Part shown: positions 1 to 13,564 of the stretch, piece after piece
Layout of the letters: the number at the start of each line of letters is the position of its first letter
Numbering within the stretch: position 1 is the first letter of the stretch
Assembly (NCBI RefSeq): GCF_002571385.2
Contig: NW_019217930.1
Location: forward strand, 372,159-436,158
Source: Stylophora pistillata
Lineage: Eukaryota
Direction of reading: 5' to 3'
DNA: 64,000 nt
The notes under the pieces: generated by a model
The model's input: the letters and a program-made list of their open reading frames with translations, nothing else
What the model was told of the DNA's origin: nothing
Database searches by the model: none
Translations under genes and position numbers: made by a program

Positions 1-753
1 ATTTATCACTTTCACGGGTTTATTACGAATCAACTTAACGGCCTGCTCCCAGTTGGCTTGTTAGCTCAATTGGTAGAGCGCTGCACTAGTATCGCAGAGG
101 TCAGTGGTTCGAATCCCGTACAGGCCTGATTTTTTTCAGGTCTGATTTTCGCTATTGCTTAAATAGCGCTATCTACTGCGAGGATCGTGCATCATACGTA
201 TCTAATACCGCAGTTCAAAATATATGAACTTCATATATTTCATTGTATCTGATTTATCACTTTCACGGGTTTATTACGAATCAACTTAACGGCCTGCTCC
301 CAGTTGGCTTGTTAGCTCAATTGGTAGAGCGCTGCACTAGTATCGCAGAGGTCAGTGGTTCGAATCCCGTACAGGCCTGATTTTTTTCAGGTCTGATTTT
401 CGCTATTGCTTAAATAGCGCTATCTACTGCGAGGATCGTGCATCATATGTATCTAATACCGCAGTACAAAATATATGAACTTCATATATTTCATTGTATC
501 TCATTTATCACTTTCACGGGTTTATTACGAATCAACTTAACGGCCTGCTCCCAGTTGGCTTGTTAGCTCAATTGGTAGAGCGCTGCACTAGTATCGCAGA
601 GGTCAGTGGTTCGAATCCCGTACAGGCCTGATTTTTTTCAGGTCTGATTTTCGCTATTGCTTAAATAGCGCTATCTACTGCGAGGATCGTGCATCATATG
701 TATCTAATACCGCAGTACAAAATATATGAACTTCATATATTTCATTGTATCTC
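1..753 (+). repeat. Tandem array (3 x 251 bp) of tRNA-Thr(AGT)-like unit, subfamily A, in a CHFR intron
   Basis: ATTTATCACTTTCACGGG recurs at 1, 252 and 503. Units are near-identical (e.g. CATACGTA/CATATGTA and GCAGTTC/GCAGTAC variants). The array runs off the window start. Confidence 0.97.
55..127 (+). tRNA. tRNA-Thr(AGT)-like core of the repeat (identical copies at 306-378 and 557-629); probably not a canonical tRNA
   Basis: GGCTTGT-TA-GCTC-AATTGGTA-GAGC-G-CTGCA-CTAGTAT-CGCAG-AGGTC-AGTGG-TTCGAAT-CCCGT-ACAGGCC-T. A and B boxes are intact and a T7 run follows. The anticodon stem has an A-C mismatch and the T stem has two mismatches. Confidence 0.6.
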
Positions 754-1068
754 AAACTGCCTAAAGCGCGGGAAAACGCAGGCGAGTAAGTCATGATTGG
801 TTGAGAGAGTGGCGCGAGTTTTCTGGACCAATCACAGAGCGAAGTAAAGCAAACCAATACAATTTCGGATTACCTTCGACGCTTAATGGTAAATTGTTCT
901 GATATATCGTCGAAGTACAAGCATGACTTGTACTGCCTTGTTAGTACTGGAATTGGGCTGTTGATAACCAATTACGTTCGAGAATTTGTTATCGTTTTTT
1001 ATTACGGCCGAGAACGTTATGTTTATGCCAATGGTAACACCATGTGTCTGTTTTCTTTCTTATCGCAG

Positions 1069-11700: not shown

Positions 11701-13564
11701 TAAATCAAACAACAACAAACATATGAAACATATGTGTGAACTGCGGTTATGAGACGTATATGAGAACGATCCTTCGCAGTAAAGCACTATTTGAGCAATA
11801 GTGAAAATCAGCTATTCTAATTTCGTAAAAAAAATTGCTGTCATTAAAACTATTCAATTTACAAAAATTGTTTCACAAAAGCAGGTCTAAACGCATTANC
11901 CTACGGTTTATTCGTCCTTATCCGAGAAGACTAGAATGTCTATCCATTTCCTGATATTATAGAAAGGTAGCACATTCTCCTCAGTAATTTTAAGACCTTG
12001 AGTGTTGGTCCGGCCGGGGCTCGAACCCTCGACCTTCCGCTCAACAGTCCGGCGCTCTATCCATTGAGCTAACCGGGAGGCGGTTAGCTCAATGGATAGA
12101 CCCGTCCGGCCCCGCTCGCGCAATCCCATAGAAAACCATAGTGAAAGCTGACGTGTGTGGGGCCGAACAGGTTAACGTGAGCCGCGCGGCCCTGGTGCAC
12201 TTGTACAGCGACACTGTTTGTTGTTGTTGCAAAGTACGAGTGACAGCAGTAAACAAAAAGGAGAAAGTAAGTCACGTTTTTCGATGAATTGCCAGTTTCT
12301 TGTAGTAAAGGAAATGTTTTTCTTTTAGAATCTTTTTTTGTGGTTTTCTCGCGCGCGTCAGTTTATTGTGTCCTATTTAAGTTAAACAAACTTTTAAGAT
12401 TGTTCAAAACTTAGTCAGAGGTCGCACGATAAAATGTTTAACTGACTGATTTAGGTCGGGCAGGACGGGAAAATACTTGGCTCTCGTTCATGACGTACGG
12501 ACCGAGCGAAGTCCGGCCCTCCCACTCGGTCAATAAGTGCATATTATTTTACTGAAAGCTAAAATGGGATTATACTTTTGTCTTTCTCCGCGACATAGGT
12601 GAAATTTTGCGAAAGTGAACTGAATATTTCAATGGAGCGAGCGAGCCTCCTTTACACCTATATGGCAAGTGCCTCGTTCTTCAGCAACCACTTCTTTTGT
12701 AATCTTAGCAAGTTTGAATTTAAGTTTTTCGACATCTTTGAACTCTACCAGTTAACAACGACATGTTTTGGTATTTGCTTGCTTCTGTTACCCTTAGCAA
12801 GGTCGTACAGCGCTATGGTAGCGTTTTCAATGCTATTTGGTTTTATGGATGGTGGCCGTTACGGCTTAATGCCGCTTTTGGTACTGGAATGTGTTGGTCT
12901 AAAAAGAACAGAGGAAGCCTGGGGCTATATTGCCTTTAGCGTCGGATTTACATCGTGTATTGGACCAGTCATTATTGGTAAGTAGTACTTAGCTGATAAG
13001 AATAATTATTAGTCGAGTCTCCATCATTCAACCACTGCAGGATGTTATGGTCCTAGGAAAAGCCCTGCAGTCTTTAGAAAGGCCCCGTGGCCCAACGGAT
13101 AAGGCATCTGACTACGAATCAGGGGATTCCAGGTTCGAATCCTGGCGGGGTCGCTGTTCTTTTGATTTAGTAAACTTTATCTTTCATCATTTCAAAAGCG
13201 TTATATCACATGTAGGGCGTAGTTATGTTTGCCAGAGGAGCATTGCTGCACTTTTAACTAGAATATTTTTGGTTTATTTAACCTTATCTAGCTTCTCTAC
13301 TACAAGTCATCCTTTAGTAAAATGCAACCCGTCCCCACTGAGTTACGAAGCTTCTCACATTTGTTTGATTTCCCAGGCTTCATCGCGGACTCAGTGGGAA
13401 GGTATGGCCCAGCATTTCTGACAGCTGGAGGGATCTTCGTGCTTGGCTCAACTCTCATGTTTCTTAGAGAGTTAATAGGAGGGAAAGACTCGAGTGAGGA
13501 GAATCTTGAATCTGGTAACGAATCTTTTGAATTCCTTGTTTACGAAAGGGAGACGGTGCTCTGA
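8775..13564 (+). CDS. Monocarboxylate transporter (SLC16/MCT family, MFS); exons 8775-8934, 10360-10940, 12599-12977, 13377-13564
   Basis: N-terminal PDSAWSWVV SLC16 motif, multiple TM helices, MFS-type GRLGFR loop and C-terminal ETVL. All three introns are GT-AG with consistent phases. Confidence 0.9.
11217..11810 (-). repeat. Tandem array (~2.4 x 247 bp) of tRNA-Thr(AGT)-like unit, subfamily B, in MCT intron 2
   Basis: ACAAACATATGAAACATATG recurs at 11221, 11468 and 11715. tRNA-like cores at 11334-11406 and 11581-11653 are identical to subfamily A; the spacer is diverged. Confidence 0.95.
11900..12085 (-). mobile_element. tRNA-derived SINE (5' part)
   Basis: Minus strand A box TAGCTCAATGGATAGAGC and B box GGTTCGAGCCC. 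The body (GTCTTCTCGGATAAGGACG) is shared with the copy at ~34613-34919. Confidence 0.8.
13081..13153 (+). tRNA. tRNA-Arg(ACG), intronic in the MCT gene
   Basis: GGCCCCG/CGGGGTC acceptor stem, TCTGA-CTACGAA-TCAGG anticodon arm, CCAGG-TTCGAAT-CCTGG T arm and a downstream TTTT. Confidence 0.93.

Follow-up and report, generated by a model that had tools for sequence, protein, structure and literature searches.

Insertions by Penelope-like elements (PLEs) are recognized by their 5' truncation, by partial tandems, by an inverted and 5'-truncated copy upstream and by a tail of 30-40 bp at one end only, and non-autonomous PLE derivatives form multicopy head-to-tail insertions (PMC8557442). Metazoans, corals included, also carry retrozymes of the non-LTR type (LTR, long terminal repeat), which are repeats of a few hundred bp with target-site duplications of more than 4 bp and have been proposed to be PLE-dependent (Cervera & de la Pena 2020, PMC7229834; bioRxiv 10.64898/2026.07.22.740005). 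In addition, tRNA-like repeats that are unexplained and number from thousands to tens of thousands are listed in papers on other coral genomes. Here, a stretch of 64,000 nucleotides from Stylophora pistillata (contig NW_019217930.1, positions 372,159 to 436,158), called the window in the following, was analyzed together with further copies from the same genome. The window contains three arrays of 251-bp or 247-bp units with a tRNA-Thr-like core, as had been stated in an initial annotation and as was verified with Tandem Repeats Finder (TRF), blastn, ARAGORN and Rfam. The family represented by these arrays is likely a high-copy, non-coding, non-autonomous retrotransposon, for whose insertion a sense-strand RNA is copied by target-primed reverse transcription, with an enzyme acting in trans, probably that of a PLE.

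The non-autonomous PLE derivatives, such as MRC1 of Chlamydomonas (Craig et al. 2021, PMC8557442), are likewise non-coding, head-to-tail multicopy and 5'-truncated, and they share with the tRNA-Thr-like family the inverted upstream copies, the one-sided tail, the high copy number and the low divergence. However, their 3' end is also that of a known autonomous PLE, whereas no such partner was found for the tRNA-Thr-like family, and they do not contain a tRNA-like module. The non-LTR retrozymes likewise have AT-rich units in short, dispersed tandem arrays, but they are defined by a type I hammerhead. The family described here has the tRNA-like module instead, and there was no evidence of circular RNA. 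Because the defining hammerhead is absent, the family is not a retrozyme. The analogy drawn in the initial annotation is nevertheless fitting, as the insertions have the geometry of those of PLEs, the proposed mobilizers of animal retrozymes. What did not stand of the proposed likeness is the self-cleaving motif, which was not detected with Rfam, and the circular RNA, which the non-integer copy numbers do not need. The tRNA-derived short interspersed elements (SINEs) likewise have a tRNA-like head with A and B boxes, are non-coding, are mobilized in trans and are flanked by target-site duplications. In contrast to them, the tRNA-Thr-like family has an RNA polymerase III (Pol III) terminator right after the head, so that the body is not a Pol III transcript, it lacks the tail typical of long interspersed elements (LINEs), and it inserts as arrays and palindromes. 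The hammerhead-bearing PLEs of the same genome (L051-L060) likewise show 5' truncation, an inverted arm, a one-sided extension and a structured RNA module about 50-125 nt upstream of the 3' end. They differ in that they contain a hammerhead, code for a reverse transcriptase and a GIY-YIG nuclease and use (TA)n as insertion site, and they have no sequence similarity to the unit. No description of a tRNA-bearing element with PLE geometry was found in the literature.

Structure of the insertions

A 49-nt piece of the core was searched in the 398-Mb assembly with up to three mismatches, and 4,920 and 5,050 matches were obtained (about 9,970). The reversed-sequence control gave 0 matches. Single units and short arrays were scattered across all large contigs, and very often a minus-strand array directly adjoined a plus-strand array. 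By extrapolation, the roughly 10,000 tRNA-like cores correspond to a few thousand insertions. The core was not found in a metagenome scan (0 matches). The family is short, abundant and young.

For the anatomy of the insertions, the units of the two subfamilies, A and B, were mapped onto 20 fetched loci and the window. Unit positions are counted from the start of the leader, with the tRNA at positions 16-88 and the T-run at 91-97. The 3' ends fell into two narrow ranges, i.e., positions 158-168 (ending ...CATACGTA) or 208-218 (ending ...TTGTATCTCA), and neither an A-tail nor a simple repeat was found at the insertion 3' ends. The 5' ends were spread over the entire unit. Target-site duplications of 9-13 bp surrounded the whole structures in at least 11 loci, e.g., ATCCAACTAC, AAAGTTGTAT, AAATATAACT and ACTACATTCT, and a single pair of duplications enclosed arrays ranging from 1.2 to more than 10 units. 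Even a mini-insertion of 103 bp without the tRNA was flanked by a 10-bp duplication and showed both types of end. Such target-site duplications, together with constant 3' ends and 5' truncation at random points, are hallmarks of target-primed reverse transcription of sense-strand RNA. The fixed 3' ends and the 5' truncation also explain why the arrays stop mid-unit with non-integer copy numbers, as correctly seen in the initial annotation, and circular RNA is not needed for this. Its proposal that the units are a mobile element and not a passive tRNA cluster was supported by the copy number, the target-site duplications and the fixed 3' ends.

In 13 of the 20 loci two arms stood head-to-head, their 3' ends facing outward. 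In all but one of these 13 insertions, one arm ended at about position 160 and the other at about 213, which results in a one-sided tail of about 50 nt; if the arms chose their ends independently, 12 such pairings out of 13 would have a probability of about 2e-4. The inner junctions were often exactly symmetric (164/164, 92/91, 200/200), and the insertion was then a perfect palindrome with a tail of about 50 nt on one side. Nine two-arm loci were compared, and in most of them the similarity between the arms was 97-100% and exceeded their similarity to the consensus.

Non-canonical junctions were collected in three genome-wide samples by pattern searches that printed the matched letters. The 5' breakpoints were almost even along the unit and roughly uniform within positions 1-80. 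A modest excess of 5' ends was seen at the T-run after the tRNA, where about 24 of 65 non-canonical junctions fell into 9 of 54 nt. Copies truncated within the T-run had a lengthened run of 11-15 T (C5:1619412, C22:840426, C35:446844, C73:266857 and others), for which slippage, untemplated addition or poly-T targets are possible causes. Two candidate hot spots were rejected. A stop of the reverse transcriptase at m1A58 (positions 73/74), which would be a sign of a modified tRNA template, was not apparent, as about 7 of 66 junctions were in positions 70-74 versus about 4 expected. The same was true for a hot spot at position 160/161, a sign of unit-length RNA (9 of 65 junctions in 5 of 46 nt versus about 7 expected). 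Many of the genome-wide junctions were fold-backs, and a few led straight from an internal position to a 3' end (213|~104 and 161|142).

One insertion (C1:1026539-1028818) contained a filler of 275 bp between its arms (C1:1027167-1027441; L032:4668-4942). The filler was 100% identical to C332:179302-179576, where it is part of unrelated DNA, and the flank of the C1 insertion was absent from C332. It is read as a template switch or filler. A 5' transduction from a source array was rejected as its origin, as no array adjoins the C332 copy.

The tRNA-like module, the hairpins and the transcripts

The 73-nt core of every unit was identified as tRNA-Thr(AGT) (48.9 bits; ARAGORN, Rfam). It has perfect A and B boxes and three mismatches, i.e., A31-C39 in the anticodon stem and G50-G64 and U51-C63 in the T stem. 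The 15-nt leader GGCCTGCTCCCAGTT lies before each tRNA, and GA and a run of seven T (T7) come after the tRNA; the run (up to T9) is conserved directly after the tRNA in both subfamilies. Alignment of units A and B verified that leader and core are identical, mismatches included, from leader position 1 to the end of the tRNA (88-89 nt). The conservation extends to about position 111, save for an AA insertion before the T-run, and the remainder of the two units is about 78% alike. Only one common polymorphic site was located in the 73 nt of the tRNA part, versus about 18 in the other 178 nt. Because the tRNA part is nearly free of polymorphism, the active lineages appear to be under strong constraint to retain the whole fold, and we infer that the invariant leader and module are kept by selection on active copies. 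Candidate roles of the module are a Pol III/TFIIIC site, a signal for processing by RNase P/Z, and a tRNA-shaped handle for export or enzyme contact. In total, 432 A-type copies were out of the canonical register at the leader, and most of the 100 listed ones break within the leader or the tRNA.

Canonical-looking tRNA-Thr(AGT) sequences were found elsewhere in the genome, on C510 (4 copies), C149, C1605 and C2014, and therefore the tRNA-Thr-like family is not the only tRNA-Thr(AGT) set of the cell. A second tRNA-Thr(AGT)-like family (…CTAGTAACAGGAGGGACGTGGGTTCAAATCC…) was also seen, with about 40 copies, some of them in arrays with a period of 370 bp. At C2:2315191, C26:315797 and C59:504926, …TTTAT was joined straight to GCTCCCAG (unit position 6); these copies are probably a deletion subfamily without about 21 nt upstream of the leader.

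The hairpins named in the initial annotation were present in both subfamilies despite the divergence of the spacer, and the two compensatory swaps named there are real, i.e., a change from G-C to A-U in CGCTATT/AATAGCG and, in the AT-rich palindrome, one from U-A to C-G. Across 20 distinct copies the four hairpins were 96.6% paired, with two compensatory pairs and several one-sided G-U changes. Both pairs separate the same two subfamilies and thus represent two events, not many, while about 0.3-0.5 compensatory pairs would be expected by chance. This is modest support for a selected RNA structure, and both strands fold equally well. The conserved hairpins probably serve as a recognition and priming module at the 3' end. 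The view of a hairpin-dependent mobile element was borne out in one respect, as the hairpin-bearing spacer is the 3' module beside the two 3' insertion ends, but the covariation comprises only two changes in one split.

A ribozyme was searched for in the units of both subfamilies, on both strands, with Rfam at the gathering threshold and at E<=10. The tRNA was the only match and no hammerhead was detected, in agreement with the initial annotation, and an Rfam scan of 17 further loci also revealed no hammerhead near the arrays. The processing or self-cleaving module that had been suspected in the unit thus received no support from Rfam, and the RNA data described below, which lack discrete ends, fit passive read-through and not a processed or circular RNA.

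A stranded raw-read RNA-seq run showed an even depth over the whole unit, with a depth of about 2,000 in each orientation, equal for both, which corresponds to about 0.4 for each genomic copy. The stranded nature of the library is evident from variant-specific strand asymmetries. There were no preferred starts or ends over the unit, in libraries from which tRNA-sized RNAs would be lost. The pattern fits passive transcription of copies that lie in host genes. Joints at which a read goes back within the unit are equally well explained by tandem DNA. At window position 702 (unit position 161), about 17% of the reads that extend across it change into heterogeneous flanking sequence, which confirmed this 3'-end site genome-wide. 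A Pol III-driven RNA covering the spacer, as had been proposed, is unlikely in view of the conserved T7 run after every tRNA. Because a Pol III transcript would stop at T7 and lack the 3' module, the template is presumably a read-through transcript, most plausibly of Pol II.

Proposed mobilization in trans and alternative explanations

The family shows a defined 3' end with 5' truncation, tandems within one insertion, an inverted upstream copy and a one-sided tail. Mobilization by PLEs in trans is suggested because this geometry matches the published PLE signature and because PLEs are abundant in the genome, in which 1,590 GIY-YIG candidates yielded 90 scored matches, among them open frames longer than 1,300 aa. 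Two canonical PLE families have a C-terminal GIY-YIG domain and a minimal hammerhead in the 3' untranslated region (UTR) (L051-L059; L060), with the motifs CUGAGGA…GAAAC / CUGAAGA…GAAA, e.g., at L059:1925-1960. The family L051-L059 shows 5' truncation and insertion into (TA)n, and in L056 the inverted arm extends further 3' than the direct arm.

In the proposed mechanism, a PLE would supply the reverse transcriptase and the GIY-YIG nuclease in trans, and the cDNA would be primed at about position 213. A cDNA that reached a variable 5' point and was joined to the target would yield a single arm, and a jump of the cDNA to the 3' end of another template would yield an array. Snapping back of the cDNA on itself and copying back to about position 161 would produce a palindrome in which one arm has no tail. 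A tentative and rather doubtful extension is that the tRNA-like module does the work that the hammerhead performs in Penelope-dependent retrozymes, with host tRNA enzymes processing or routing the read-through transcripts into templates. RNase P/Z, and perhaps the export or modification machinery, would then recognize the tRNA fold.

Several results weigh against mobilization by a PLE. No autonomous partner was found among the PLE families compared, i.e., the two hammerhead-PLE families, a comparison that lies outside clades such as Naiad and Hydra. The family L051-L059 was rejected as partner, as the local alignment of its 3' UTR with the unit had a p of 0.36 versus shuffles, and a 53-nt match between a hammerhead PLE and the unit was dismissed as weak, AT-rich chance. 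The 3' UTR of the second family, inspected by eye only, had no similarity to the unit. In the genome-wide junction samples, no recurrent context from outside the family was present upstream of the A-type 3' region. The tail of about 50 nt is longer than the published 30-40 nt, there was no obvious bias for microsatellite targets, and the RNA-seq data gave no evidence of an element-specific transcript. The link to PLEs is one of insertion geometry only.

It is unlikely that the family is an ordinary tRNA-derived SINE mobilized by a LINE, with inverted arms formed by twin priming and arrays formed by template jumping of the LINE reverse transcriptase. The tRNA-like head with perfect A and B boxes, the target-site duplications of about 10 bp, the 5' truncation and the chimeric filler typical of template switching would all fit such an origin. 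However, the T7 terminator directly after the head means that the whole element is not transcribable by Pol III, and there is no poly(A) or simple-repeat tail, LINE 3' ends being outside the comparison. The T7 run and the missing LINE-type tail thus argue for excluding an ordinary SINE. Furthermore, multi-unit arrays are the rule, and the strict pairing of the 160 and 213 ends with symmetric inner junctions does not match twin priming, which was also rejected because the coordinates of the arms do not abut in the three loci tested (L043, L045, L049). An ordinary SINE or satellite with gene-converted cores, which the initial annotation had named as the finding that would speak against its proposal, is likewise improbable in view of the target-site duplications, the T7 run, and the arrays and palindromes. 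A retrozyme-like element that spreads via circular or unit-length RNA, produced by a self-cleaving motif or by cutting with RNase P/Z, has a low probability as well; it would be compatible with mobilization by PLEs. The units match coral hammerhead retrozymes in size and arrangement (PMC7229834), are circularly permuted in insertions and form arrays with an exact period, the hairpins are conserved, and the 5'-end excess lies just past the 3' end of the tRNA. Yet no Rfam ribozyme was detected at E<=10, RNase P/Z cuts would remove the tRNA that the arrays retain, and the RNA-seq data showed neither preferred ends nor joints that tandem DNA does not explain. In addition, 5' hot spots were absent from position 161 and from A58 of the tRNA, and insertion 1 of the window mixes two unit variants, which is impossible from a single monomer circle.

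Two explanations at the DNA level are both very improbable. One is a functional tRNA-Thr(AGT) gene family or satellite that spread by unequal crossing-over, extrachromosomal circles or fold-back repair and was homogenized by gene conversion. Each unit indeed contains a promoter-competent tRNA and a terminator, the cores are identical, and thousands of "tRNA" repeats are listed for other coral genomes. In contrast, the target-site duplications, the two fixed 3' ends, the truncated units, the mini-insertions without tRNA and the three stem mismatches are at odds with genes or a satellite. The insertion structure and the separate canonical-looking tRNA-Thr(AGT) sequences elsewhere in the genome largely refute this explanation. 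The other is a fold-back or terminal-inverted-repeat DNA transposon with arms of tandem subrepeats, for which the head-to-head arms and the flanking duplications of about 10 bp could be cited. However, many insertions have a single arm, arm lengths and inner junctions differ from locus to locus, and the outer ends are same-sense 3' ends at two unit positions instead of identical terminal inverted repeats. No version bearing a transposase was seen, and the chimeric filler is an RNA-derived feature.

Features of the window and meaning of the family

The coordinates of the three insertions and of the structures within one A unit are summarized in Table 1. Two of the arrays were recognized by TRF, and the third (54496-54907) by reading and blastn. 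Insertion 1 ends 3' at unit position 213, reading ...TTCATTGTATCTCA, and its first unit deviates from the other two at three sites; at two of these, unit positions 158 and 176, both forms are common family-wide. Insertion 2 is truncated at its 5' end at unit position 105 (window 11811), its 3' end is unit position 208 (window 11214), and it has no clear target-site duplication. The 5' end of insertion 3 is at about unit position 246 and the 3' end at unit position 161 (window 54907), followed by six additional bases (54908-54913).

Table 1. Coordinates of the insertions, tRNA-like modules and 3' structures in the window, and loci of a second tRNA-Thr(AGT)-like family.
Feature	Position	Strand	Remarks
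Insertion 1	1-754	+	Subfamily A, 251-bp unit, 3.0 units; cut by the window start; TRF (1-754): period 251, copies 3.0, matches 99%
tRNA-like modules, insertion 1	55-127, 306-378, 557-629	+	
3' module of one A unit	630-754	+	
T-run hairpin	626-645	+	A unit
Stem-loop 1	652-670	+	3' module of A unit
Stem 2 (ACTGCG/CGCAGT)	677-682 with 711-716	+	3' module of A unit
First family-wide 3'-end site	701/702		Unit position 160/161; in the stem-2 loop
Stem-loop 3	720-742	+	3' module of A unit
Second family-wide 3'-end site	754		Unit position 213; 12 nt past stem-loop 3
Insertion 2	11214-11811	-	Subfamily B, 247-bp unit, single arm, 2.4 units; TRF (11217-11811): period 247, copies 2.4, matches 100%
tRNA-like modules, insertion 2	11334-11406, 11581-11653	-	
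Fragment of tRNA-like core	34879-34909	-	31 nt, unit positions 18-48, 90% identity
Candidate target-site duplication of insertion 3, left copy	54480-54489		10 bp, ATTTTTATTT; read directly
Insertion 3	54490-54913	+	Subfamily A, single arm, 1.64 units (array 54490-54907)
tRNA-like modules, insertion 3	54511-54583, 54762-54834	+	
Candidate target-site duplication of insertion 3, right copy	54914-54923		Read directly
Second tRNA-Thr(AGT)-like family	C50:910443-911213, C148:184092-184862, C362:130975-131374		

Further features of the window were observed. Directly 3' of insertion 1 is another high-copy repeat (798-853), with an RNA-seq depth of about 900 per orientation versus about 0 at 868-900 and with read breaks at 794 and 853. 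A canonical tRNA-Arg(ACG) gene (13081-13153, 57.9 bits) is unrelated to the tRNA-Thr-like family, and so are two tandem repeats at 41936-42216 (93 bp x3.0) and 7048-7145 (51 bp x1.9).

Taken together, about 10,000 near-identical "tRNA-Thr genes" in a coral genome are cargo of a mobile element and not genes for translation, and the tRNA annotation of coral assemblies must allow for such elements. The insertions show the odd features of the Penelope type at single-base resolution, i.e., two 3' ends, a one-sided tail, snap-back arms and template jumps, and the family is therefore a convenient natural substrate for the study of the poorly understood Penelope-type integration. If the tRNA-like module were indeed the counterpart of the hammerhead, the family would represent a ribozyme-free, tRNA-based class of PLE-dependent elements, and the unexplained "tRNA repeats" of other coral genomes could be the same thing. 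A tRNA fold that functionally replaces a ribozyme would link host tRNA processing to the propagation of a retroelement.

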